A DNA stretch of 64,000 nucleotides from positions 372,001 through 436,000 of the forward strand of contig OZ287709.1 in the NCBI GenBank assembly GCA_965649825.1, in the 5' to 3' direction. The stretch's first letter is position 1. Each line of letters starts with the position of its first letter. Positions 1 through 63,129 of the stretch are shown here, piece after piece. The notes beneath the pieces are model-generated. The model worked only from the letters and a program-made list of their open reading frames with translations. It was not told the DNA's origin and made no database searches. Source of the stretch: Penicillus capitatus. Its lineage: Eukaryota > Plantae > Chlorophyta. The position numbers were made by a program, and so were the translations under genes.

Positions 1-438
1 GTTTGTAGGAAGAACAGAATTATTGCGAGCTTCATGATTCACAGACTATATTCATCATACCATGTTTTCCGTCGGCAATGTCCTCGCGAGACGTCGGTCT
101 GCTAGAGAATTGTCTTATTTCACATCAGCTGCTTTCAAACCAATCGTATAAAAAACTGTGACTCAAGTGGACAGACCACAAGCTTCATGTAGACAAAAAC
201 ATCAGATGAAGTTGAAATATCGCCACGAGAAAGAAGAAAGTTAACCCCATCAAAGAGTACCTTATCCCTGACTTTAACCAGCTTGCTTTCCACTTTGACA
301 GAAATGCTTTACGGCAAAAACCTACGATGTCAAAGAAGGAGAAGAAAGCTCAAGAAATCCCACATATGATGGTAAAATAAAAACGGATCGTGCAGTTGTT
401 GATGTTGTGGTGAAAGAATATGGAAATCGGAAGAGCCA

Positions 439-1569
439 CTATTTCTGCTCTGTCTTTTTGTTGCCGCTGCCAATTTGTTTCTTCAACAATGCATCCACTT
501 CTTCCTGCTTGGCAAAGCGGCCTTTGATGCGTGGACGATTCTCGGCATAGGCTTTACGCGATGCGTAACGGATCCTGTGTCCCCACGTCCGTCTCTTACG
601 TTTTTCTAGATATCTATCACACAAAGAGGCAGCTTCGCATCAGCTCCCTTTCAGACATCGGATGCAGATCAGACCTTGCTACTTTTGCCTTTCGAATGAG
701 GTTCTGTTCAGCAGTGAGCTTTCGAGGAGGGATTGGAACAGTGTTGCTGGGTTGTGCCACTTCGACGGCGGGAGTCATGTCGGGGTGCACATTCACTCGA
801 TAATGTTGCACAGCTGTCGCAGGAGCAAACGTGCCCGATGGACAACATGACGAGGCGGCAAACACACAGCAACCATTCATCCAAGGCCTTTCTATCCCTA
901 AACCATACATACTCCATCACTTACAGGTATTATGCAAAAACGAACAAACATTACCTGCATAGTGGCTTGTTATTGTCGGGCACATTGGATGCTCCTCTTT
1001 GACATATCTCACTTCCTCTCTCTCCTGTTCCTCTTCTTTCATCCAGCCAACATTCGATTTTGCATCCTGCAACGGGAAAACGATCTTTGTGATGTGACCG
1101 ACGGTATGAGGGCGCACATGGAGTGAGCAAACAAGAGTATCATCGTAGTTGGTCGGGTCATCCAAGCAACCCAATACATTATCAGAAAAAAGACAAACAT
1201 CCGGCAGTGTCGTGCAGATGTCATGGTTCGTATGCAAACTACGCCGCGGAAAGAGCGCAGATGAAGGCATTGCTGCCTCGTTCTCCCCCATCTCGGAGCA
1301 TCTCTCAGACGTATTGTCCAGAGGACTCACGCTACTGTCGGTACCGCTTGAATCCTGCGCGACATGTCTGCCTTTTTCAATCATCCGGTGCTTCGTTCTA
1401 CCTGACGGCAATACGTTGCACTGCTGTTTGTCTTGGACAGACAGGCGCCACGCGCATAGAACTCGTTTTCCGTTGCAGGCGCTACTGAAACGATGTCACC
1501 ATTATCGTAGCTTCCGTTCTGAAGCGACGCATGAAACTCATCAGGCGGCCACTTCAGGCGCTGCTGCAT
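439..1569 (-). CDS. CCT-domain (CONSTANS-like/CMF) protein, spliced; 5' end uncertain
   Basis: A GT-AG intron at ~613-666 joins RKAKVAR to [35 protein letters not shown], a full CCT motif. No B-box recognised upstream. Confidence 0.85.
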
Positions 1570-1726
1570 GAACGTCGGTTGAAACGCAGAAGCGCTATCT
1601 TCGAGTCCCACACACTCATACGACGAAAGCAGACCGTATCCAGTGTCTAATTCAGTATTTAGCCACATCGATGCCGTCTGTAGGTCAAACAGGAGATCCC
1701 ACGATCCAGAGCGACAGACGCAAAAG

Positions 1727-2729
1727 ATGGAATGCGCAGGAGTTCTCTTTCGATGTTTTGATGTGACAGTTCCAACCTTCGACGGATTCTTTCGATGGCG
1801 TCGGTTGCGCGCGCGTCTCGAGCAAGATGTCCTGACAGCCACAGTCACGCGGCCTCGCGTCTTGTGCCCGCGGCGTTGTTTCCAGTACATGTCTCTCCGC
1901 CGCATCGGAAACGACCAATCGCGTTGCGCTATGGCATTGACCGTTACGATGCAAGCGATTCGAGACACCTATCGCCTCGGGGTCGCGAGGTCGTGATCTC
2001 GGGCGCCGTTTCGGAAGGACTCCCGGTCTACGAAATAGCGGCGGGAGTTGGCAGTCGTTTCTCATTCGTTTATCTCGGCACTTTGGTCTCCATGCTGCTC
2101 GGTGCGGCCTACCTCGTTGTACGGCAAGTCCTCGTCCGAGTGGAAATGGACGAGGCGATGAAGCGATTGGTCGACAGCATTCGAGCAGGAAATGCCACAA
2201 GCGAGGTCACTCCTCTCACTCTCCTCTAGACTGACATCTCACACTTTTGATAGATCTATTATGAGTTGGCAGCCATCCTGATCCGCAAAAAACTCTATAT
2301 CCAAGCAATCAACAATCTCGAGAAATCCATCAATCTCTGGGAAGAGGAAGATGTGGAACTGGCACAGGTCGAGCAGAAATCGCGAAGTGACGTGACACAT
2401 GTTTGACGATGCAGGTGTACAATGCCTTGGGTTATAGCTACTACTGCCTTGAGAAAAACGATCAGGCACTCACGAATTACAAAAAGGCAGTCGCGCTGCG
2501 TCCGAACTACGTCTCGGCTTGGAATAATCTCGGAGATGCACACGAGCGTGCTGGCCAATGGAAGTGCGATCTGTGACATGCCTCTCTCCCTCGCCATCAC
2601 ATTTTTGCACTTAGGGAAGGCTACGAAGCGTACAAGCAGACACTGAAATACGATGCCGTGAACAAAGTGGCCCTAGAACGCGCGAACTATTTAAAACAAA
2701 AATGCGAACGATTGGGCATTCCGGCTTGA
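1727..2729 (+). CDS. PYG7: Chloroplast TPR protein of the Ycf37/PYG7/CGL71 family (PSI assembly), spliced
   Basis: TM segment YLGTLVSMLLGAAYLVVRQVLVR, then YELAAILIRKKLY..LAQ|VYNALGYSY..AWNNLGDA..YDAVNKVA TPR repeats. The last exons are too short for the ORF track. Confidence 0.85.
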
Positions 2730-2812
2730 ACCATAACCATCCCGTACGAACGCCATTTTGACATGTTCTGTTCATGACACAGTTTTCCTTTAACGTCTGT
2801 CCGTCCGTTTGT

Positions 2813-4279
2813 TCAGCTACTCGTCTCTGAGGCACTGGGTGTCGATGCAGGTGCGGGTTCCAGTTGCGACACGGACGTCGGTGGGGTGGCGGCGGCGGAC
2901 GGCGGCTCCTTTTCTTCAGACGTCTGCTGCTGCGCTTGTAACGTCAACTCATTCATCTTCATCATAAACTGCATGACTTCGGGATCGTTGACGTACTTGC
3001 TCATATTGGCAGGATTCTGTTGCAGGTCCACCACAGCCTGCATCACATTTGGCTTCTGCATCATTGCCACCACTTCAGGCTCGTTCATCAGTTTCTTCAT
3101 CAGCACGTCGGGACTGATGTTCATCGTCTCTAACTGTCTTTTCATATCGGATTGTCCCGCCTGTGTTTTGAACCCCTGCACCACAGACGGGTACAGAAAT
3201 TGTTGCAAGGCGATTTAGAGACTTTGATCTGTTGGAGAAGCTGAGGCGTCATCATTGACTTGAACTGCTCTTTCACCATTGGCGACGACATGAGGTTCTC
3301 TAGCATTTCGGGACTTCTCATATTCTCGGGGAGAAACTGCACGAGAGATTCGCGCATTTGTGGATCTCGTAACATATCGAACATGTAGTCCACTGCCTCG
3401 TCAGGGTTCTCCACTACAGGCTGCTCTGTCGTCTGCTCCATCGGAACGTCTTGGAAAAACGAAGGCGATGCCGGTGGCGGCGAGGGCGTCGGCGGCATGT
3501 CCGTTTTCACGGCAGAAGGCGTCTGAACTCCGTTCTTCTGTGGATTTGACTCCTTTGACCCGGCTGGATTGAAAGGAGAGACAGGAGGCGGCGAAGGGGG
3601 AGGTGACGTCGAGGTTTTGGGGGACATCTGAGGTGCCGCTGCTGCTGGGGTAGAAGGTTGAGCCGTCGTGTCATAAGCAGGAGGCGTTGCCATTCCGAAA
3701 GGATTGGCAGATGGCGGTACGGCTCCTCCAAAGGGTGGTGGCGGTGGTGTTCCCTGGGCATTGGACATCTGACTCATCATCTGCTTCATCATCATCTCCG
3801 TCATCGCTTCCTTCGGATGACTGACGAAATTCATGATCCGAGTGAAAACTGTCGCCAACAGCATGCCCACCATGATCCATACCCAGGGAGGCAAGACATT
3901 GGCCGGTTCGACAGTGTACTGAGGAGGCTGGACGGGAAAGACGGGAGGTCCCGTGGGATAGGCTTCGTGGTAGTGCCTCACAGGCGGAGTGGCGACGGGC
4001 AGTTGCGATGGATCTTCAGAAGCGACGGCAATGTCGGCATCGACCATCGCCTAGATGAACGTTCCTTAGGCGGAAAGGCACGAGACAGGTGTTTACCGTT
4101 TCTGCGGCAGGTTCATGGACTTTCTCTTCCGTCGAGCGTCGTTTGGCCTGAGCATAGAGGAACGGACGTCGAGCGGGACGCAGGGGTCTGTTTGTTCGCG
4201 TCAGGAAAAAGTGTCGCTGCGAAGGTGTCCTTCGAACGGCGACGCAGGGGCACTGACGTAGTAAGGCCGAGTGGATCAT
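2813..4279 (-). CDS. TIC40: Chloroplast inner-envelope translocon co-chaperone TIC40, spliced
   Basis: Transit-peptide-like N-terminus, TM segment PWVWIMVGMLLA followed by MMMKQMMSQM, Pro-rich linker, MLRDPQMRESLVQFLPENMRSPE, and C-terminal STI1 domain (LMNEPEV..QNPANMSKYVNDPEVM). Confidence 0.9.
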
Positions 4280-4853
4280 CGCCGCGCAAAACTCAGTGGT
4301 CTGGCCGAACAAGTGATGACGTGTCGTGCACGAGACCACGCACTGTGTGACGTTGCAATGCGATTCTTGCAAAGGGCAGCGATGAAAACCCCGCGCGTGC
4401 CACCGTGTCTGCTGCGCATGTCAGCAAAGACGATCGGTATACGGCGCGTTCTCTACGGTTGCGTATCTACGGTACATGTCCAAAGCAGCCTTACAAACGG
4501 ACAATCGAACAACATTGATATCGGTTCCGCGTTCTCGCTGACTCATCGCTCGAAATATAAACCACGCATTTTTCACGAGAAATCGACCAGATGCCCCAAT
4601 TCAGAAAACTAAAAAGCAAAGAAGATCGTCTTGATGATAAGCAATGCCATGCGAATTCAGAAAATGGTGGATCTCTAATCCTCCGGGCCTCGGACGGGAG
4701 ATGCCCAATGAAACGTCCGCATCAGTCGATGGACGGATGAATGATCCAAATCGCATCAACTGCACTTGGTGATTTGTCATTAAGAAAAGGCGGCCGGCAC
4801 ACGCAGCACAATGTGTACATTATTAGAAGCGAGTGAGTGAATGGGCAACCCAT

Positions 4854-7800
4854 CTATTCTCGATCAGCAGCCATCGCATCCAGTGTATTAGCAATGTGCA
4901 TCGCTAATTTTCGTGCCTCCTAAAACAATAGAGACGATGGTGGGCGATTCGTAAGCGAGAGGATGAGTCACTTGTGAAGCTGCAGCAGCTGCATCTGCTT
5001 TGCTCTTGGCTTCCCTAATCCCCGTTTGAATTTCCCCTTCTGCCCTCCAATGCTCCTCAGCGCGCGCAGAGCCTTCTCGAGCAGACTACAGACAGATATC
5101 AGGGATAGAGCAACGCCAACGAGAACGAACGAACTTCGCGCGCTGTTCGGCAGGCAACCCAGGCTGTCTCTACTTTCTTGGCTATCTCCTCTGGCCACCG
5201 TGGATCTTGCGCTTCATTATTTGTCAATCCTTGAACCCATTTTGGCTTTCCTTCTACCCATTCACCTGCCCACATTTCGCCTAGAGCACCACGTCACGCA
5301 TCGCTCCAATGCAACTCATCCCTCTGCATTTCCTGCCTGTTTCAATTGTATAGATACACCAGCCATGCTTCTTCCCTTGGACCCATTGTCCTTCGTACTT
5401 CTGACCGGTTGCAAAAATGTAAATGCCATATCCGTGCGGAATATCACATTCGTATTCGCCCAGGTATCGATCACTGTTTGGGAAGCAGTAATAACCGTAG
5501 CCGTGTCTCTTGCCGGCCAGGTAGTCTCCAATGTAATTGCTCTCTTCTGTGCATTGCTGCATACCTCTCCCTTCGCGCAGTCCATGTTTCCACTGTCCTT
5601 CGTAATAGTCGCCATTGTAATAGCGACAGGCACCCCAGCCATCCCGCATGCCGTTTGTGTATTCGCCACGATATGTCGAGCCTCGAGCAAAGGTCTCATT
5701 TCCAGCACCATCATAGACACAGTTGTTCCATTGTCCCTCGTACCGCCCCTCGTTGGCAAATGTATAGACTCCGTTGCCCGACATGCGATCGGCAACGAAT
5801 TCTCCTTCGTAAACATCGCCATTGACGAATTGATAGACGCCTTCTCCATTCTTCTTGCCACCCTGATAGCGTCCTTTGTAGATATCTCCATTGCGCAGGC
5901 GGCGAATTTGATAGTCGCCTCCTTGAGTTGAATTTGAAGAAGGAAGGCCTCCAGCCATCTTCATGATCACGGTCTCTTCGACCTTGACAGGACGGGAAGT
6001 GCCATTCGAACTTGCTTCGCTCATCGATGTCTGACGGCCTTCGGATGTCTTGGCAATGCGGGAGGGGGCATAGGAGTCACGTGCCAGTGCAAGATCCATG
6101 GCTGCCTGTGCCGATCCGATCTTGCGGAGAGCTCCGTCGACGGCACGCATGTCACTCAACCGTTTCTGATGCTCTGTCATACTCAGTGCACAGCTTGTAG
6201 GAATTGGATTTCGGGTTTCCATCTCGGTTAATCGATGTGCACAGGTTTTGAACTCAGTCTCGAGTCTTTGGATCTGCCCAACGCAATCAGCAAATCCACG
6301 GAATGCATGATGCCATTCCTCAGGCGACTGCTTCTGGATACCTTCCAAATTATCCATCAGCAAGCCATTATGCCTGTCAAACAGACACAGTGTTCACTAG
6401 ATCGTATGGGGCGATGGAAACCTGAGAAGTGTGTTGATCACATCTTTCATGCTTCGAAGTTTTCCTCGGTAAGCATAGTTATCGTTATCTGTCCCTAGAT
6501 CCTCCAAGAGGGAACTAAAGTTCGGAATTGCATCTAACAGAGCATCTAAGCAACGTCTGACGGCTAATAATCCTTCTTCTGCCACTTCTTCTGGGGCCGT
6601 TGCACTAAAGAGTAACATCAAGGGTAGGAAGAGTGGGATGGATATAGAGGTTGGCACGGGGGAGTGTGTTGGCGAACCGACTCGGCAGGGAGAGGGTTCT
6701 CCACAGCGCGGAGATTTACGGAATAGACAGACGACTCTGCTTCAGAGCGCCGTGACGTCTTGGGACTGGGAGGCGGTGTACCACGAGGTCCAGAAACCCG
6801 ACGCAATGGAGATCCTCCCACAGGCGCAGGAGATCTTGATGTGCCTGTTCAGCATAACAGGTCGTACAATGAAGACCCTGTCTGATAGGCAGTCTCTCTA
6901 CTTGGGATGGCTGTCTTCGAGCGATGATGCGATATGGACAGTTCTGTCGAATCTTGCATCGTTCGCCTCGATCCTTGCATCTCACGCATGGCCTATCATT
7001 TTAGAGAGTGAGACAAAATGAGCAAGGCAGTTTGCATCCACTGCTGTGAGTTCCGTTGCGTAGTTGCGAGAATCGACCGATGCCGTTCGGGTGTGTGGCC
7101 GCGTCCGTGAGCTTCGTGATGTATACGATCCAGAAGGGCCAGGTGTTCGCGATGCCCTTGAACGTCTTCCTGCTTCGATGTAGCCATCGTAGGAATGATC
7201 ATAATCATGCTTGCTCCCTAGATAGCAACACCCACGTCCATACCACGCAACAAAGAGCGCCGCTGCGTACCTTCTGGTTTGCCGTAGATATTGAAATGCG
7301 AATGCATCCAGTAGGGCATAGGAATACGGTCTGTTCCACCTTTGACGCTCCGTAACCGGCGTTCACAAGGATCATACGTTGGCAACGGCTTCCTTTCTGT
7401 AGCACCCATGAAACACGTCCAAAAGCAAATGATGTCTGCGATGAGGACTTTTAAGGTATTTATGAAGAAATTGAAGCAGCTCTAGTGTTTCGCTTGGAGA
7501 TCCCCGCATGAGTTTCTGCACAGCCATGTCCTACACCACAGACACATCTTTAGCAAAACACACAGATGTCGGCATCTGTGCTGTGCTGACCCTGTTGATT
7601 TGTGCATCGGCAAAGACGTTTTGCAAAATCTTGTAGTTCGGAACAAACTCATACTCTTCTCTTGCATGGAAATTCACCTAAACGTAAATGACTCAGCATC
7701 CAGTCCATCGCGACGGGGTCACTCGACGTACTCTGTGAATCGGGACGAGTTCTTCAAAGTAAGCGTCCATCATTTGACAGAAAACCGCCCCAGACGCGAA

Positions 7801-8018
7801 CTGTCAATGAGCGGTTGGGTATCGTATGTTGGAAGTCGAACGCGTCTCACTTCTTCGAGTCGTGTAATGCCGAGCATAAGTGTTTGGTTGACCCAGTCTA
7901 TCAGTTGACTTTTGCTCGGGTGATAAATACCCGAAGTCACAGACGACGTTGCTGAGTGCCGTCCCACTCGGCCCTTTGCTAAGGGCTGAATAACACCGCC
8001 GCCTTCGGAGTCCGACAT
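4854..8018 (-). CDS. Multi-exon protein: EB1-type calponin-homology domain + S/P/R-rich linker + syntaxin-Habc-like helices + 8-9 MORN repeats
   Basis: Spliced CH: LIDWVNQTLMLGITRLEE|FASGAVFCQMMD..|VNFHAREEYEFVPNYKILQ..YDPCERR. Successive in-frame ~47-60 nt GT-AG introns link it to the MORN block (YKGRYQGGKKNGEG etc., 5281-5900). The two domains are secure; the fusion is inferred. Confidence 0.7.
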
Positions 8019-8128
8019 CACCTCACGCAAGAAAGATACGTGCAGAGCAAACAAACAAACAAACACAACGCGGCGAGGCACACGCGTCGAGAACTGCAAA
8101 AAGAGCCAAATGCACGTTATCCGTCTCA

Positions 8129-9858
8129 ATGGCCCATTTTCTAGTAACTTTCACAGCGATGCGCCGACTTGTAAGGCACTACCTTGCTGTTTCTTATAGT
8201 CTTATCTTCAGCAGCTTCGCGTCGGCGATGCTTCCGTCAGATCCCCAAGCGTATCGACATCGACTCGTTATTATCGGTGGTGGACTGGCAGGGCTCTCAT
8301 GTGCCCATGAAGCCTCGCGTCAGTGGGAAAGGGCGTATAGTGGACGTCCGTTCGAGATCTACGTCATTGATAAGGAGCCCCGTCTCGGAGGGAACAGTGT
8401 CAAGGCGAGTAGCGGCATTAATGCCGTCGACGGGAAGGAACCGGACGCCGTGGCGTCTTTTATCAAAGATACACGACTCAGTGGTGGTGGACTGAGCGAC
8501 GATGATCTGATTCAAACGCTCGTAACCCGAAGCGGCGCGGCGATTGAGTTTCTCGAATCGTTTGGGGTGGAATTGAGTGGTTTGACGCAACTCGGTGGAC
8601 ATTCGACGAGTCGCACCCGATTCAATCCCGCTGGACCGAACGTCGGATTTGCGATCATGCAAAAACTCATGGCGGCGGCGGAATCTGATCCGAAAATCGA
8701 AATTATCAAGAGTGCTAAAGTGACGGGCATTGAGATGCTCAATAACCGGCATCCCAGATACGATGTCCTATTCTCCAGGGAAACGTGTAAGTAGCTGCTG
8801 TCATGTCACAATGAGATCGTTCATCCGTCGCGTGTAGATCGAGCACATGTGGATACACGTGCATTTGTGATGGCGACAGGAGGATTTGGAGCAAACAAGA
8901 CATTGCTGGAGAAGTTTGCACCCGAAACGGCGCCATATGCCACGACAAACGGCCCCTGGTCAACAGGTTGCTCCTCGGCCGTTTCTACAGACCGATGTGA
9001 CGTGTTTCGTGTCCAGGGGATGGTCTGGAATTGGGAAAAGAACTTGGAGCGCGATTGGTTCACTTGGAAGAAGTGCAACTGCATCCAACAGGCTTCGTTG
9101 ATCCAAAAGATCCAGATGCAGGTCCTGTCAAGATCTCTTCTGCATGACGCCATTCATGCATGAACATCTCTAGGGAGCAAGATCTTGGCGGCGGAAAAGT
9201 TGAGAGGGTGCGGTGCTATTCTGATGAACATGGAAGGGCATCGTTTTGTGGATGAGCTCAATCGACGGGATCACGTTTACAGCAAGCTCTCAGAACAGAC
9301 GGGTTTCGCTCCTCGATGCTCTGACGGGATTCGGAACGGTCTGCTGCTGTCACAGGGGAGAAGGCGTGGTTGCTGTTATCTGCAGCCGGCGGCGAAAAGT
9401 TCAATGTCAGCCAAATGGGTTTCTACATGGGCCGTGGACTGATCAAGACCTTGGATTCCATTGACGCTATGTCTGAACATACCAAAGTTCCGGCCGCCAC
9501 GCTGAAAAAAGAGATTGAGACGTACAACGCAGCGGCGAAGACGAACAACGATGCATTCGGCAAGACAACGTTTCCCACAGACTTCGACATCAATGGTCCT
9601 TTCTACATGGCAATGATCACACCTGTGGTGCATTACACGATGGGCGGTTTGAGAATCAACACGGACAGTCAGGTGCTTAAAGAAGGCGAAGGCATAGCTC
9701 TACCGGGCATCTATGCTGCCGGAGAGGTGTCAGGAGGATTGCACGGAAAGAACCGCCTCGGTGGAAATTCATTACTGGATTGTGTTGTGTTCGGACGTCA
9801 GGCCGCCAACCATGCGATTCATTACATCGCAGAAACGAATGTTCATGAGGAGCTGTAG
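8129..9858 (+). CDS. Soluble FAD-dependent fumarate reductase (Frd1/Osm1, flavocytochrome c flavin-subunit family), spliced
   Basis: IIGGGLAGL FAD motif, GGNSVKASSGIN, LGGHSTSRT, QLHPTG, EKLRGCGAIL, VHYTMGG, GLHGKNRLGGNSLLDCVVFG; the protein ends HEEL. Confidence 0.95.
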
Positions 9859-10168
9859 GCGAACGAATGATAAAAACGAATCCTGTAAACAGTCTGCGAT
9901 ACGTTGGAAGGGATAAACACTTGTGACGCCCTGTCGATGCACCGGAATGCGTCGGTGACTGGCTCGAGAGGGCCATCGATGTCGGGGCTTTGGCAGTCTT
10001 TTTGCGTTATGTTTGAAGATCAAGTGAAGTGCGTACAGCGACGGTTCCGGTTTAAATGTCTGCGTGTCTTTGATCGACACGCACGTCTATCGTTATGTGT
10101 CGAAAAAAGAAGCCGTTCGAGCAGTACGTGTCTTATTTGGAAATAAAAAACGTTCGAAAGGGATCACT

Positions 10169-11233
10169 CTAAGTCAACTGCAGCACCATTGTGGTCAATG
10201 CCACGCTCCACCTCCAGTACAATACTGCCATAGCGAGAAGAATGAGACACGAGACACATTCAGATGTAGAGTCCGACAGCAACGGAGTAAATGAATTTCT
10301 GTCGGTCCTACGTCGGGTCATCAGAAAACGCACTCTCGCTGACCTTTCCGATTTCCATAGAGCAAAAGAAACATATCCCGCTGAGAAAAACACCATGAGA
10401 AAGGCAGACAGATGCAGACATGGAATCTTGATCGGAGGCGTCGTTTCATCGAAGACGCCGATCGTCGATCTTAGGAATGCGTAACAGAATTCGAAGATGG
10501 CATCGACGACGGCATCAATTTTGTAGAACACAGAAGCCCCTCTCGATTCTACGATACGTTCGCACAACACAGGTGCTCTGCCGAAGAGAAAGATGAGATA
10601 AGTGATGAAATGCGTCGGCAGGTGGTCCTCGAATTTGAGAGTGATGCCAAAAGCGTACGGAAAATTGCCCAGTGTTTCGGTTACCATCAGGAATTGCACT
10701 ATCACGACAATGGGGTTCGGGACCAAAGCAAACATCCACTTCTGGGAGTCATTTGTCACGCTGCCCACCAAAGCTATACAAATTCTACAGATGCGTTCGA
10801 ACAGGATCTCTTGGATAAGGTGACATGACCTGAAGATGATAGACATGTAACGACGCAAGCGCAGAACGCGCTGGGTGGATGAAGCATGATACACGTGCCA
10901 CATGCCAACGGTTAATGCGCTGATGCCGAACAATGGCAGAGTAGGGAGTAACCGAAACTCCTGTTCCACGACTGCCTTGATGGAAATGGAGAACAGGACG
11001 ATAGTAGTGACAAAGAAGAATCGGAGGTCGCCCGGACGGTACATCTGTTCGTAAGCATAGCGTTCGAATTCGGATTCGAGGGCGGCGTCACGGAACGTAA
11101 GCAGCAGTGGACGCATGACTGCGTCCGTAGCTAAACGCATCGCGAAGAAGACGTGCGTGACCTCTCTGAGACGTTTTATGTGATGACTAATGTCGAAACG
11201 CGCTATCACATCATCATCTCCTCTAAGAAGCAA
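10169..11233 (-). CDS. Hypothetical multi-pass membrane protein (possibly spliced)
   Basis: 354-aa ORF with several hydrophobic segments, bracketed by LTFRDAALESEFERY and WKSERSARVRFL. No catalytic domain recognised. Confidence 0.55.
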   Translation of the reverse strand: MLLRGDDDVIARFDISHHIKRLREVTHVFFAMRLATDAVMRPLLLTFRDAALESEFERYAYEQMYRPGDLRFFFVTTIVLFSISIKAVVEQEFRLLPTLPLFGISALTVGMWHVYHASSTQRVLRLRRYMSIIFRSCHLIQEILFERICRICIALVGSVTNDSQKWMFALVPNPIVVIVQFLMVTETLGNFPYAFGITLKFEDHLPTHFITYLIFLFGRAPVLCERIVESRGASVFYKIDAVVDAIFEFCYAFLRSTIGVFDETTPPIKIPCLHLSAFLMVFFSAGYVSFALWKSERSARVRFLMTRRRTDRNSFTPLLSDSTSECVSCLILLAMAVLYWRWSVALTTMVLQLT

Positions 11234-46573: not shown

Positions 46574-47567
46574 TGTTGGCAGTCGGCGCGGCCTGGAGGT
46601 GGTCGACGGATGCCCCGCGGCGTTCTGCGCGTAGATACGAGACGCGCAAGACCAGAACCAATTGATTAATATTCATTGTCCTGTTCACAAATCTATGCTC
46701 ATCCACAGTTACTATCCACATGCTTCCCTGTGCACTCCGATCGGTAACTCTAATCGGCCAGCCAAACCACTGGAAAGCATGTCTTGTTCCGTCGCTTGGA
46801 TACCAGTGACAAGGAAGAATCTGATTATCACGATCCTCGTCTGCAGATGTGCAGATTCCAGCGCATCTTCTCCCGTGTCCACGGTTCGCCGACGCTTTTG
46901 CATGGTTGTCGGTCTTCAGTTCGACGATGGATGGCGCATTTTTCGCCAGACGGAGCAATCACCTCGCGCGGTACGTCATCCTCTGTCACCGCATGGTGTG
47001 TCCGTTCAGGCGTCCCATCGTCGGCCCCTTGGCTGGAGTTCCCCTGGCATGTCCGCGACGACACGTCAGCGCCACGCGACCTCCACTGCGCATCCACGAC
47101 TGCGCATGGAGTCGCCAGACTGCGACACCTCAGCCAGGCCGACGCGACCCCGCAAGACAGCACTACCGGCTGATGCGACCCGCGACAGACCTCCAACACA
47201 GCCCGTGCCGTCATTTATGCACAGGGGGGAACAAAGAGCGACGCTTCAGCAATACAATCTTCGTCTTCGGCAAACTCCAGAGGACAACAAATGTAGTCGA
47301 CAGTGTTTTTTCAACCCTCGGCAGTTATCCGTCGCCTCCAGGACTCCGACTGAGAGCTTCGTCTTGACGAGCATTGCGTTCAGCGGAAGCATTAGGAGCA
47401 CCTCGCGCTCCGAAACCATCTGTTGGCAGTCGGCGCGGCCTGGAGGTGGTCGACGGATGCCCCGCGGCGTTCTGCGCGTAGATACGAGACGCGCAAGACC
47501 AGAACCAATTGATTAATATTCATTGTCCTGTTCACAAATCTATGCTCATCCACAGTTACTATCCACA
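46574..47567 (-). mobile_element. TRIM-like miniature LTR retrotransposon (994 bp)
   Basis: Identical 147-bp TG..CA LTRs (46574-46720, 47421-47567), 5-bp TSD GAAGT, PBS TGGTTTCGGAGCG 2 nt after the 5' LTR, purine tract AGGGAAG before the 3' LTR, no recognisable intact gene. Confidence 0.93.
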
Positions 47568-48414
47568 GAAGTCTTGAAGCAAGATGAAAGTAGGCGGGCA
47601 AGGACGATGGAGGAAAAACCAAAGTTCTATCCAAGAGACAGCTCGTTGCAACGACGATAGACAGCAGATTTTTTGACAAGCAGATTGTATGCAATTCACA
47701 GACACAAGTGTAAACTTAGATGTCAAGCAAAAGATGATTCATGTGTCCATCCCTCGGTTTCATACTCAACTAGTGACCGGACCGACAGGACAAGTTAAGA
47801 ACAACCCGTGAAGTTAAAGAGTGAGTTCCCGATGAGATTCTATAAGTTTCTAAAGAACTTCACTATGAAAATCACCAATAGTTCGCAGTCCTTGTCATCA
47901 CGGCTACCTTGCAGCACCCTCACAGCCAGAGGCGCAAAACCGACAAGTGATAAACAAAATGCCGCCGATTACAATGACGTCCCATCAACGTTCCCGTTCG
48001 AATGGCGCTGCCATATTGTGGCACTTACAACGACAGCTGCCATCTTGGAACGTGTGCTACTCAGAAGGCATGTCTGTTCGCATCTGTCGCGTCGTTGCTC
48101 GGAACTGCCGGTGTTGTGGCGGGGCGGCCGCTCGAACGATCAATGCAGCGGAAGTCTTTACAGGCTCGGAGCAGAAGCATTTCAAAGTTCAGAATCGCAC
48201 ATTTATACCCGCAAATTGATGTGACTCACCGAGGCAGGTTCAAACACCACAGAAACACGCCTCAGATGAGTCATCAGTGTCTCTCTGCGCGATGAACCCC
48301 TTCACCACAAGACAGAATGACATGACCCCTTGTCGAAGACAACATGGGCCCACCCCTTTCGCTTGCGTATACTCCGAAAGCAGGTAAAACCCCCACGAAA
48401 AACAAATAATCAAA

Positions 48415-49446
48415 TCAGTCTATGCCCGAGGTGAATCGTCGCAGCGCCGAGAAGATGGTCCAGCCCGAGGATGATGATTCTTCTGTGTTCGGTTCCCCCG
48501 CTCTCTTCTGAGAATCCGATGTCGTCGGATTCGATGACTCAACCATATCCGTAGTCCGCACTCGCGGACAATCCTGTGCCAGGTGCCCCTTACATCGACA
48601 GCTGTAGCAGATCCGTCCGCGTCTCATGGCTCCGCCATCGTCTGCCGCGTCGGCCGTCTTCTCTCTTCGCCGTCGCCGCGGATACCGCCCAACGTCGTGC
48701 AACACTCGTTTCATCTGTTGCAAAGTCTTTTCACTTCGTCGATTCCCCTCTGGTTTCTTCGCCATCAACTCGGTTGTCGTCCTGACATCCCTTTGTAGCG
48801 TCTTCACCTCGTCGGCCAGTGACTGTAGACATGGCACCAAGTCAGGTGCCGAAATATACTTCTGTTTCTCCTCTGCGAAGGCGGATTCCGTCTCTTCAAG
48901 CCTCTGTTTCGTGGAGGAGGCTTCCTCGATAGCCTCGTTTGCATCCTGGTGCGCCTTGTTGATGTCTTGTTTTGCTTCGGAAATGTCCTTCTGCAGTTCT
49001 GCGTTGATGGCCGCAAGTCGCTCGATTTCTGCTGTCGCCTCGGCTACCTCGCGTCGTAAAAGCTCGACCGACAGTCCCCTTGCAATACCACTTGATTCGG
49101 AAGCCTGCAGCGTCGCTTGTAACTCTTCCTTCTCGTCTCGCAAATCTCGCTTTTCCCGAAGCCATTTCTCCTTTTCGTCTTGCGAGTCTCGCCGTTCTTT
49201 CAGCCGCGGACAAATATTCCTTAGAAACTCAAACATGCAATCTTCGTCTACCAACAAGTAGGAAAAATCGTCGTTGTGATCATCTGGCTGTATCCAAACG
49301 CGAAAACCGTGAAGTCTGGGGCACAGCCCTTCGTCTTGACCAAAATACGCAAAGAGACTTTCCTCGTAACCGCGTATACCATAAACCCCGTGGCTGCCAC
49401 CCTCGACGTGACCCTGCTCCCTTCTTCTTTGTCGTGCTCGACTCAT
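48415..49446 (-). CDS. Element-encoded coiled-coil + CCHC zinc-knuckle (Gag-like) protein, 343 aa
   Basis: Intact ORF with a long heptad-rich region and CYSCRCKGHLAQDCP. Its TGA stop is the first 3 nt of the 3' LTR. Confidence 0.85.
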   Translation of the reverse strand: MSRARQRRREQGHVEGGSHGVYGIRGYEESLFAYFGQDEGLCPRLHGFRVWIQPDDHNDDFSYLLVDEDCMFEFLRNICPRLKERRDSQDEKEKWLREKRDLRDEKEELQATLQASESSGIARGLSVELLRREVAEATAEIERLAAINAELQKDISEAKQDINKAHQDANEAIEEASSTKQRLEETESAFAEEKQKYISAPDLVPCLQSLADEVKTLQRDVRTTTELMAKKPEGNRRSEKTLQQMKRVLHDVGRYPRRRRREKTADAADDGGAMRRGRICYSCRCKGHLAQDCPRVRTTDMVESSNPTTSDSQKRAGEPNTEESSSSGWTIFSALRRFTSGID

Positions 49447-49632
49447 CCTTGACAATTCGCTTCTCGAAATTCCTTGTGCCTAGGTGTGCCTAGTCAGGAC
49501 TCAACGGGCGCAAAGCACACAGCAAATGCGCAACGTCACACAGACGGAGTTCAAACTGAGGAACGTTTAACAACGCTCCGAAACCATGTTGTGGCGGGGC
49601 GGCCGCTCGAACGATCAATGCAGCGGAAGTCT

Positions 49633-49682
49633 TTACAGGCTCGGAGCAGAAGCATTTCAAAGTTCAGAATCGCACATTTATA
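49633..49682 (-). promoter_or_regulatory. TATA box and TGTAA poly(A) signal within the 306-bp LTR
   Basis: On the minus strand, TATAAAT (49676-49682) is followed by TGTAA (49633-49637), consistent with U3-R-U5 order and a chlorophyte poly(A) signal. Confidence 0.6.
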
Positions 49683-50247
49683 CCCGCAAATTGATGTGAC
49701 TCACCGAGGCAGGTTCAAACACCACAGAAACACGCCTCAGATGAGTCATCAGTGTCTCTCTGCGCGATGAACCCCTTCACCACAAGACAGAATGACATGA
49801 CCCCTTGTCGAAGACAACATGGGCCCACCCCTTTCGCTTGCGTATACTCCGAAAGCAGGTAAAACCCCCACGAAAAACAAATAATCAAATCACCGGACAG
49901 ATAAACTATGGCATGGCGAGCAGCGCCCTCGATCATGCAGCTTTGCAATACGCTGAGCAAGGAAAGCATGTCTTGAGTACTCAGCGGGGAGCCTGGACGG
50001 GACGTGGAGTGGCAGCACAGGAACGCATCACCGTTGCCCGAGTTGAGCGTATGGGAATGCATTTGATTCAACCAGAGATGGACCTGATGACACTGTTAGC
50101 TATACTAAGATACTCTGTCTGCGACGGTTCTGCCATTGTTTACTTCAACTGGCCCAAGTTTGCAGCGGCGAATCAAAATTTGACAGCCGCCATCTTCTCT
50201 GAGAATGTCGCACATGTCGACATACCACAATAGACACCGTCACAATC

Positions 50248-51427
50248 TCAGAATGCAGTCTGACGGGTACGCGAGAACGGTTCTGGCCCCGCGGACCGGA
50301 CAGGCTGTCCGCTTCCTGACGCGACAGGAGTCCGCGTGGGCCAGGGGTATTTATGTGACAGGCCGCACCATGCTGTAGTCTTAGCTTTGACTCCTTGCAG
50401 TCCCTCCGCATTCGCACACGCGTCGGCGCGTTCGCGGCGCGCCAGAGTCTGCCGCATCCCCGTCACAGTCCCAGCAGGAATGCTGGCTGACACAGCGACA
50501 GAGAGTGTCCACAGCATTTTGAGAGTGTGTGTGAGGATGATTTTCTCATGGAAGACGGATTCGATTTTCGCGAAAGCGTCGAACCGCGCTCCGCTATGGA
50601 ATCGAAATTTAGCAAACTGTTACCGAGCACACTTGTTTTTTGACTATCCATTCTACCGTCTCTGCCATTTCGCGTCTGAAAATTCCCTTCTTCGCCCCTC
50701 AGATTCCGTTGATGTCACATCGCATACCGACGAAGCTGTCCCGGCCGCGCATACCGACGAAGCTGTCCCGGCCGCGCATACCAACGAAGCTGTCCCGGCG
50801 GCGCATCCCGACGCCCCCGACGCCCCCGACGCCTCTCCTAGCGGCGAAGTCGAAGGCCTTTGCGCCCCACCCTCAGCTCCCGTCTCCGAGATGTGAACTT
50901 GATGACCGTTGAGCACTACTCCACCCCTCGCCACGGCACGGTCGACCGCATCAGCCGCATCAAAAAAGGCATATCCCTCCCCCGTCGGGTTCCCTGTCCG
51001 GTTGTCGACCACTACAAGAGAAAAAATGACATCGTCAATATACGCAATAAGTTTTCATACCCTGCTCGAGTCGCTGCACGGGTTCGCCGAGGATTCTCTC
51101 TAGCTCGAGGTGGTTGAGTCGACGAAGAAGGTCCGCCGGGTCCGTGCTTGTTGGCAGATTCTGCAGCCGGACTCTGTGCGTCTGCTCCACCTCCATTTCC
51201 TCCCCTGGCTGGATGTCGTCGAGAGATGGTTCTGCGTCCATCTCGACGTCTGCTGGAGGCTGGTGCTGCTCTGGAGGCGGCAGTGGGGTTTCCTTAGACA
51301 AAACAAGTAATTGTTAGGGTTATAGTGGCGGTTTTGGGGTTGTGCTTACTTGGCCTGTGGCCATGGCGCGAATGCGTTCGATGGCTCTTCTCTTCGATGC
51401 TCTATCGTATGGGGTGCGTGAAGACAT
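50248..51427 (-). CDS. RRM-containing protein, spliced; 3' end uncertain, may be a pseudogene
   Basis: Canonical introns join ATGQ|ETPLP..VRLQNLP (RNP2)..RLEQ|VVDNRTGNPTGEGYAFFD (RNP1). Confidence 0.6.
50722..50833. repeat. Tandem repeat: 3 x 27 bp followed by 3 x 9 bp
   Basis: GCATACCGACGAAGCTGTCCCGGCCGC x3, then CCCGACGCC x3; in frame within the RRM ORF. Confidence 0.9.
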
Positions 51428-51527: not shown

Positions 51528-51614
51528 TGGCAGTGGTGACGGTTTCGTCTGCGCTGGCGACGGTGGTGGCAGTGGTGACGGTTTCGTCTGCGCTGGCGAC
51601 GGTGATGGCAGTGG
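51528..51614. repeat. Tandem repeat, ~2.2 x 39 bp
   Basis: TGGCAGTGGTGACGGTTTCGTCTGCGCTGGCGACGGTGG repeated. Confidence 0.9.
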
Positions 51615-62649: not shown

Positions 62650-63129
62650 CGCTTATGGTTCTTGGATTTCATCAAGGACAGACACAGGCAGCAAAGCGAA
62701 CTGGGTATCACAATTATCCATATGTTGCAGAATACAGCCATAAAGCTGTGAGCCAACCACTTCAGCGACTTTATATCCCAAAACTGGAACACGTGCTTCA
62801 ACTACCGCATACGTTCGTGTTTCCACTCTTTGTGTATGACTATCGTATCTTCTTTCTTCAAATCGTCTGTTCATCTTGTCGAGCAAAATGGTTTGTAAAT
62901 GTCCTTTCAATTGGTGGATCCAAAACAGGTCTCGTCGAAAGCACGAAGCGAACGACGCAAAAACGCACGAAGCGGAGAGAACTGTAACGGAGGAGCTTAA
63001 AGCTCCGAAACCATGTAGCGTAAGAACCGAAACAGACTTAACAGGGGAAGTTCGTAACAATAGCAATGGCTCTAATGTTTTCATGTTCTTAAGGACCACT
63101 GTCGCATCATCTGTTAAAATAACACAACA
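62650..63129 (-). mobile_element. Truncated LTR element: candidate ~116-bp LTR + PBS + degraded internal ORF
   Basis: On the minus strand, TGTTGTG...GCTACA (63129-63014) is immediately followed by TGGTTTCGGAGC. No clear second LTR; the LTR's outer boundary is uncertain. Confidence 0.5.

Follow-up and report, generated by a model that had tools for sequence, protein, structure and literature searches.

A pol-less long terminal repeat retrotransposon family encoding a coiled-coil and zinc-knuckle protein, probably represented by a very recent insertion in a green alga

The element in the window

We analyzed a 64,000-nucleotide stretch of contig OZ287709.1 (GenBank assembly GCA_965649825.1, positions 372,001 to 436,000 of the forward strand; hereafter, the window), which corresponds to contig ctg340026_48x_l (211,840 bp) of the ENA metagenome assembly ERZ25074695. 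The feature under study is a small long terminal repeat (LTR) retrotransposon at 48112-49892. Two direct repeats (48112-48417 and 49587-49892), identical at 306 of 306 positions and bounded by TG..CA, delimit a 1,781-bp element oriented on the minus strand, with the 5' LTR running from 49892 to 49587. Automated repeat finding returned 300 nt of the 306-bp repeat, and probing the 64-kb window with the LTR yielded no copies beyond these two (0 expected in shuffles). The same 4-bp target-site duplication (TSD), CCGG, lies directly outside both ends, and the 5' LTR is directly followed by the primer-binding site (PBS) TGGTTTCGGAGCG. The interior holds a single intact open reading frame (ORF) of 343 aa from the ATG at 49446 (346 aa from an upstream TTG) to a TGA stop (48417..48415) formed by the first three bases of the 306-bp 3' LTR. 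No protease, reverse transcriptase (RT), RNase H, or integrase was detected in the element by Pfam searches or by tblastn with local Pol proteins. The paired LTRs, the CCGG duplication, the PBS, the intact ORF, and the lack of pol had all been read from the DNA in an initial annotation, and each held up here (Table 1).

Two other points of that annotation, namely, that a polypurine tract (PPT) is missing and that the stop codon coincides with the start of the LTR, apply to the window copy at its 306-bp boundary, where the 21 nt preceding the 3' LTR are not purine-rich. However, a PPT does exist inside the repeat: comparison with sibling copies places the canonical LTR start 73 nt inside the 306-bp repeat, with the PPT, AAGCGAAAGGGGTGGG followed by CCCA, 5-20 nt before it. 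In its canonical form, the element is 1,708 bp long and, in the window copy, its native 3' untranslated region (UTR) makes up the opening 73 nt of the 306-bp repeat. The extra 73 nt before the 5' LTR are what lengthens the LTRs of this copy to 306 bp. Thus, all four structural hallmarks of LTR retrotransposons (TG..CA repeats, a TSD of fixed length, a tRNA-type PBS, and a PPT at the canonical 233-bp boundary) are present.

The 306-bp LTR contains, in the sense of the element, TATAAA at position 211 and TGTAA at position 256. Green algae usually have TGTAA as their poly(A) signal, and this motif occurs in every LTR of the family described below, 30-70 nt before the LTR end, a position that would fit a short R region. 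Transcription would be expected to start from the TATA box of the 5' LTR and to extend as far as the TGTAA signal of the 3' LTR.

Table 1. Coordinates of the features of the element, in window positions
Feature	Position	Strand	Evidence
TSD CCGG, downstream side in element sense	48108..48111		identical CCGG at both element ends
Canonical 3' LTR, 233 bp, start TGTTGTC, end CCACAACA	48112..48344	-	boundaries match siblings L002, L003, L013
Native 3' UTR, 73 nt, from TGA stop to canonical LTR start, PPT included	48345..48417	-	identical 73 nt in L002, L003
PPT AAGCGAAAGGGGTGGG, then CCCA, then canonical LTR start TG	48349..48364	-	recurrence of the junction in relatives
Single ORF, 343 aa plus TGA stop	48415..49446	-	translation; 33 homologues; dN/dS
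CCHC zinc knuckle, aa 280-293, CYSCRCKGHLAQDC	48568..48609	-	C, C, H, C invariant in 29 family members
Long helix, predicted coiled coil, aa 68-196	48859..49245	-	AlphaFold2 model and heptad pattern
Small N-terminal beta domain, aa 20-66	49249..49389	-	AlphaFold2 model of aa 1-110
5' leader between PBS and ATG, 127 nt	49447..49573	-	first ~30 nt after PBS conserved in L001, L005, L011, L012
PBS TGGTTTCGGAGCG, immediately 3' of 5' LTR	49574..49586	-	same 12-13 nt in every family member read
Canonical 5' LTR, 233 bp	49587..49819	-	comparison with siblings
Extra 73 nt before 5' LTR, second copy of 3' UTR and PPT	49820..49892	-	absent from L002, L003, L013
TSD CCGG, upstream side in element sense	49893..49896		identical CCGG at both element ends

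The remaining gene content of the window is that of an ordinary eukaryote and includes genes for a MORN-repeat protein, AAR2, a HAD hydrolase, an FRG1-like protein, and a septin. All named homologues of the septin come from Chlorophyta (Monoraphidium, Scenedesmus, Tetraselmis, Dunaliella, Chlamydomonas, Trebouxia, and others, 41-51% identity) and, therefore, the host is a chlorophyte green alga; closer homologues (64-68%) come from EukProt and metagenomes. Joining the flanks into the empty site of the window insertion revealed no clearly disrupted host gene, and an Rfam scan of the window gave no matches. Two tandem repeat arrays lie ~1-2 kb from the element, one of 27-bp units inside an ORF (50721-50813, three HTDEAVPAA-like units) and one of 39-bp units (51528-51614).

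A family of pol-less elements and its protein

Thirteen related loci from three metagenome assemblies (ENA ERZ25074695, ERZ26696514, and ERZ27276715), referred to by L numbers, were read and measured. These loci represent at least seven subfamilies, with ORF identity of 26-98%, and share one layout in a unit of 1.39-1.96 kb: LTRs of 98-268 bp with TG..CA ends, spaced 1.27-1.7 kb apart; a PBS 0-2 nt after the LTR; a leader of 140-180 nt; one homologous ORF; a 3' UTR of 60-120 nt terminating in a G-rich purine tract; and the second LTR. Twelve relatives of the window element carry TG..CA direct repeats (the family copy in L012 has a rearranged 5' LTR), the PBS sequence TGGTTTCGGAGC is common to all thirteen loci, and pol is absent from every one of them. 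The PBS is of the TGG... tRNA type, and tRNA scans of the window and six loci detected no tRNA gene and thus no candidate primer. The junction between GGTGGGCCCA and the TGT of the LTR is common to L002, L003, L006, and L007 and slightly altered in L008, L009, and L010. Despite encoding proteins only 26-30% identical to the window ORF, L008 and L009 (assembly ERZ27276715) keep the same PBS and the junction of GGAAGGTGGTAGGCCCA with TGTCAGAG.

The copies sit in different places. TSDs of the window subfamily are 4 bp long in all four copies (CCGG, CCGT, ACGT, and ACGC), and those of other subfamilies are 5 bp long (AGATG, GAAGT, AGTGC, GGAAG, GAAGG, and ATGGC); L006 and L007 (assembly ERZ26696514) are identical elements at two different sites. 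Given the different flanks and TSDs and the shared pol-less layout at thirteen loci, the window element is not a lone deletion derivative, and the family transposes as a 1.4-2.0 kb unit consisting of an LTR, a tRNA-type PBS, one ORF, a PPT, and an LTR. A non-autonomous family of this kind had been one of two readings offered by the initial annotation. The full-length copies with different TSDs that it proposed to look for were found, but the merged ORF/LTR junction is confined to the window copy. Family members are often located in transposon-rich DNA.

At the protein level, 33 homologues of the ORF were identified, with 40-98% identity and lengths of 219-505 aa, nearly all 300-400 aa, and all from ENA assemblies. 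The 90% identity cluster containing the window ORF has 6 members on 6 contigs, and another cluster has 16 members on more than 10 contigs. The 505-aa member (P0013) was rejected as a genuinely longer protein: its gene call starts upstream of the 5' LTR and runs through it. When 1.84 billion representative proteins were searched exhaustively with the family profile, ~25 family-type sequences were recovered, all of at most 500 aa, the other matches being to the CCHC motif only; a profile of distant members (A2) gave at least 3 proteins, and a scan of JGI metagenomes likewise gave knuckle-level matches only. In the loci read, homologues occurred solely within the LTR context. The eight subfamily ORFs that were compared are all intact. 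The ratio of nonsynonymous to synonymous substitution rates (dN/dS) is 0.15-0.20 between siblings, as calculated from only 2-9 synonymous and 1-6 nonsynonymous changes per pair, and 0.2-0.5 between subfamilies, at dS of 0.7-1.9. These values, obtained as the initial annotation had advised, indicate that the ORF has been kept intact under purifying selection across deeply diverged subfamilies.

AlphaFold2 (AF2) modeling based on 29 family members, complemented by a separate model of the N-terminal 110 aa, revealed a disordered N-terminus (residues 1-18), a domain of three beta strands and one short helix (20-66, pLDDT ~90 in the N-terminal model), a single helix (68-196, pLDDT 87-98 over most of its length), two further helices (200-229 and 239-252), a disordered basic stretch, the CCHC knuckle, and a disordered tail. 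In the long helix, the a and d heptad positions are hydrophobic in 47% of cases, vs 10% elsewhere, in one register over 129 residues. Region 230-300 contains 21 K/R vs 9 D/E. The order of parts anticipated from the sequence (small N-terminal domain, coiled coil, basic stretch, and CCHC) was thus recovered, with a predicted coiled coil of ~130 residues (roughly 150 in the initial annotation). The motifs FI.APDLV..L.SL, KTL.QMKRVLHD.GR.P.RRR, R.CY.CR.KGHL...CP, and the tail SGW....RR.FTSGID are invariant or nearly so across the family; the N-terminal domain and the middle of the coiled coil are variable, with many indels, and distant relatives retain the central motifs. In the family alignment (A1, columns ~280-460), subfamilies differ in the mid coiled coil by insertion blocks in mosaic patterns, for example, the WKGLHDELYREFEQ block shared by P0007, P0009, P0016, and P0026; such patterns suggest recombination between subfamilies.

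The detectable relationship of this protein to Gag is confined to the knuckle. Pfam matched zf-CCHC below the threshold (14.4 bits vs a cut-off of 20.8) and otherwise gave coiled-coil noise. Across 29 aa, the knuckle shares 52% identity with its counterpart in a local gypsy Gag, and the family hidden Markov model (HMM) produced no match beyond the knuckle to the Gag-Pol proteins of the neighboring gypsy elements in L006 and L012. Foldseek found nothing better than E = 0.2 for the full model against PDB and BFVD or for the N-terminal 110 aa against PDB. Double-stranded RNA-binding domains were the top-recurring entries but had poor scores (E > 0.5, TM score ~0.25, root-mean-square deviation ~10 A), and the N-terminal domain was not assigned to this fold. 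Neither a capsid fold nor a Pfam Gag domain was detected by Pfam, the exhaustive profile search, or Foldseek, in agreement with the initial failure to recognize a capsid motif, and the AF2 model contains one long helix, not capsid bundles. Hence, the ORF does not turn out to be a standard Gag in profile searches, and the suggested comparison with capsid and LINE-1 ORF1p folds uncovered neither a capsid fold nor an RRM or CTD fold. The protein thus occupies the Gag position and has a nucleocapsid-like knuckle, without a detectable capsid domain; its predicted architecture is closer to that of an ORF1p-like coiled-coil chaperone, without homology to one. The protein is predicted to multimerize via the ~130-residue coiled coil, and the basic stretch and CCHC knuckle are predicted to bind and chaperone the RNA of the element, in place of Gag/nucleocapsid. 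RNA binding and packaging, with multimerization through the coiled coil, would be the proposed role of the ORF.

The extended LTR and possible Pol donors

The three siblings of the window copy (L002, L003, and L013), which are 98-100% identical to it at the protein level over the aligned parts, have LTRs of 233 bp that start with TGTTGTC and are preceded by ...AAGCGAAAGGGGTGGGCCCA. In these siblings, the 4-bp TSDs and host flanks abut the canonical LTR start, and the ORF stops 70 nt upstream of the 3' LTR; the fusion of stop codon and LTR is therefore not a family trait. Over the canonical element, the window copy is 99.7% identical to L003, and the 73 nt from the sense codons to the LTR (TGA counted) are the same in the window copy and siblings. 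What sets the window copy apart is a second copy of these 73 nt before the 5' LTR, with the CCGG duplication flanking the extended ends; such an extension occurs in one of the four copies read in this subfamily. The PPT of the window copy is unchanged.

In reverse transcription of LTR elements, the left end of the cDNA corresponds to the point where plus-strand strong-stop DNA begins, a position set by the plus-strand primer. The 306-bp LTR is thus probably a replication accident caused by plus-strand priming 73 nt upstream of the PPT. Plus-strand synthesis would have started at the base after the last sense codon, and the left end of the cDNA would then carry the 3' UTR, the PPT, and U3-R-U5, giving the product [73 nt-U3-R-U5]-PBS-...-ORF-[73 nt-U3-R-U5]. 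The new end would start with TGATT, and the complementary strand would end in CA-3', usable by integrase; this fortuitous TG/CA-3' end may be the reason the aberrant product was integrated. As the PPT is unchanged, the RNA of the window copy should be the same as that of a canonical copy, so that the extension should not be inherited. The window copy would then document, in natural and integrated form, plus-strand priming upstream of the PPT, an event that, to our knowledge, has otherwise been studied mainly in laboratory retrovirus mutants.

For reverse transcription and integration, these elements would rely on a partner RT and integrase supplied in trans by autonomous Ty3/gypsy-type elements in the same genome. 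Ty3/gypsy elements adjoin family members, and none was matched as the donor. L006 contains a Ty3/gypsy-type element (2206-8338) with the LTR TGTGAAG..TTAACA and TSD ATGGT. A family member (5701-7092, TSD GGAAG) is nested in its pol in the same orientation, between RT-RNase H and integrase. The same locus holds another LTR end with the family PBS at 8402 and, on the opposite strand at ~9650-10900, ORFs that by eye resemble retroelement protease and RT. L012 encodes an uninterrupted Gag(CCHC)-PR-RT-RH-IN frame (PR, protease; RH, RNase H; IN, integrase) of Ty3/gypsy type (1-4084; 1,503 aa by gene call), with a family copy 1.4 kb downstream. From 4100, the sequence after the pol stop starts with TGTCGCG, similar to the TGTCGCC and TGTCGGC starts of some family LTRs. 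This element, seen without its 5' LTR and PBS, which are outside the fetched DNA, is a candidate Pol donor by this resemblance. Neither tblastn nor the family HMM tied the RT fragments in L002 or the L012 Gag-Pol to the family.

The TSDs fall into two classes: 4 bp with a central CG in the window subfamily and 5 bp, often GAAG-like, in all other subfamilies. These classes hint at two integrases and, hence, two partner elements.

Other mobile elements were observed near family members. On the minus strand of the window, 540 bp from the pol-less element, lies a 994-bp element (46574-47567) resembling a terminal-repeat retrotransposon in miniature (TRIM), with identical 147-bp LTRs (TGTGGATAG..GCCAACA), the 5-bp TSD ACTTC, and no convincing ORF; after a 2-nt spacer, it has the same PBS, TGGTTTCGGAGCG, as the pol-less family. 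In L013 (5643-7536), the sibling with canonical LTRs is split by a 1,894-bp insertion flanked on either side by a 14-bp duplicated sequence (TGGCCGACGAGGTG). This insertion, whose opposite strand encodes a 472-aa ORF lacking any Pfam match, may be another kind of mobile element. A PBS-like site on the minus strand of the window (63001-63013, TGGTTTCGGAGCT, one mismatch) lacks a surrounding LTR pair and was dropped; it represents a decayed element or a chance match.

Interpretation and comparison with known systems

Taken together, we favor, with a rough probability of three in four, the reading that a member of a non-autonomous LTR retrotransposon family of a chlorophyte green alga inserted very recently at 48112-49892, a reading that includes the existence of the family, its mobilization in trans, and the replication accident behind the 306-bp repeats. 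The other possibility raised by the initial annotation, namely, that an autonomous gag-pol element lost pol through an internal deletion after insertion, has the absence of pol from the window copy as its sole supporting point. This scenario is contradicted by the independent TSDs of pol-less copies at thirteen loci from at least seven subfamilies and three assemblies, by the conservation of the ORF end and the PPT region, by the lack of any family protein above 505 aa, the longest itself having a mis-called start, and by flanks that differ too much for the copies to be segmental duplicates of one locus. The outcome that would have spoken for a deletion, a lone copy with gag-pol relatives, is not what was found, since there are independent pol-less copies and no relative with gag-pol, and we consider this origin extremely improbable. 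Alternatively, the ORF could have been captured or be carried as a passenger, or its product could be a regulator that hampers the autonomous partner, as truncated Gag restriction factors do; the lack of a capsid fold and of homology to the neighboring gypsy Gag outside the knuckle would agree with this, as would the fact that no function could be assigned to the N-terminal domain or the conserved C-terminal tail. This explanation seems quite unlikely, given that every element, down to 26-30% identity, has retained the ORF in intact form and under purifying selection, that no homologue outside this LTR context occurs in the loci read, and that the exhaustive search yields no cellular family. 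A pure passenger would not be kept so consistently in elements of 1.4-2 kb.

Several observations weigh against parts of the favored reading. The copies lie on metagenome contigs of unequal coverage (4x to 344x) and maybe come from several related genomes. Among the loci read, the search for an autonomous element sharing its PBS and LTR ends with the family was negative, and the one complete neighboring gypsy element, that of L006, has a different PBS, TGGTGCGGTCACC. Any particle would have to form without a recognizable capsid domain. The priming error, in turn, is invoked for one copy, at whose new 306-bp border there is no purine-rich primer site. Both circumstances would also suit an alternative in which the 3' UTR and the 5' flank underwent recombination or conversion to give the 306-bp LTR, or in which a sub-lineage normally has LTRs of this length. 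Such an origin is nevertheless unlikely: CCGG flanks the extended ends exactly, as the 4-bp TSDs flank the canonical ends of the three siblings; the extension matches exactly what lies upstream of the 3' LTR, and the two 306-bp repeats do not differ at any position; and, with the PPT region unchanged, transcripts would again give 233-bp LTRs.

On a longer time scale, a green-algal LTR lineage might have swapped a capsid-type Gag for a coiled-coil/CCHC chaperone that resembles non-LTR ORF1 proteins in its build and become a long-persisting, independent "protein-only" parasite of autonomous elements, with subfamilies tuned to different integrases; we put this forward tentatively, the tuning being suggested by the 4-bp NCGN vs 5-bp GAAG-like TSDs. 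The family would also indicate that the protein retained by a non-autonomous element need not hold a capsid domain, the coiled coil and one zinc knuckle having been kept across divergence to 26-30% identity. The family also offers a compact, ~1.7 kb, one-protein system for addressing which function a parasitic retroelement must, at minimum, encode in cis.

Literature searches returned no description of this pol-less coiled-coil/CCHC LTR family. The protease, RT, RNase H, and integrase that define autonomous Ty3/gypsy or Ty1/copia elements are lacking. The local Ty3/gypsy elements of L006 and L012 resemble the family in their TG..CA LTRs, TGT... termini, 5-bp TSDs, and a similar CCHC knuckle but encode Gag-PR-RT-RH-IN; in addition, the L006 PBS differs, and the family HMM misses their Gag region. 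TRIMs and large retrotransposon derivatives (LARDs) are likewise non-autonomous and have the same structural signals but no conserved ORF, in contrast to the selected, intact 343-aa ORF here. LINE-1 ORF1p-type proteins combine a long coiled coil with a nucleic acid-binding module in the first ORF, and some ORF1 proteins of non-LTR elements carry CCHC knuckles. The window protein similarly joins a long coiled coil to a putative nucleic acid-binding module, but Pfam and Foldseek detected in it no RRM fold, no CTD fold, and no sequence similarity to ORF1p. LINE-1 elements lack LTRs and insert by target-primed reverse transcription, their ORF1p having an RRM and a CTD after the coiled coil. By contrast, the LTRs of the window element, together with its tRNA-type PBS, PPT, and short TSD of fixed length, place it in the LTR/integrase pathway.

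The closest named class is TR-GAG (terminal-repeat retrotransposons with a GAG domain), small LTR elements of plants with a PBS, a PPT, one ORF in the gag position, and no enzymes, which are regarded as semi-autonomous and mobilized in trans (PMC13570524). The window element shares with TR-GAG the LTRs, the PBS, the PPT, the single ORF, the absence of pol, and a length below 4 kb (1,781 bp). The differences are that TR-GAG ORFs are recognizable Gag or Gag/protease of Ty1-copia and Ty3-gypsy lineages, whereas the window ORF is not, and that TR-GAG hosts are land plants, whereas the host here is a chlorophyte alga. So far, Gag-only non-autonomous LTR elements have been a plant story involving an ordinary Gag; the family described here would extend this strategy to chlorophyte algae.

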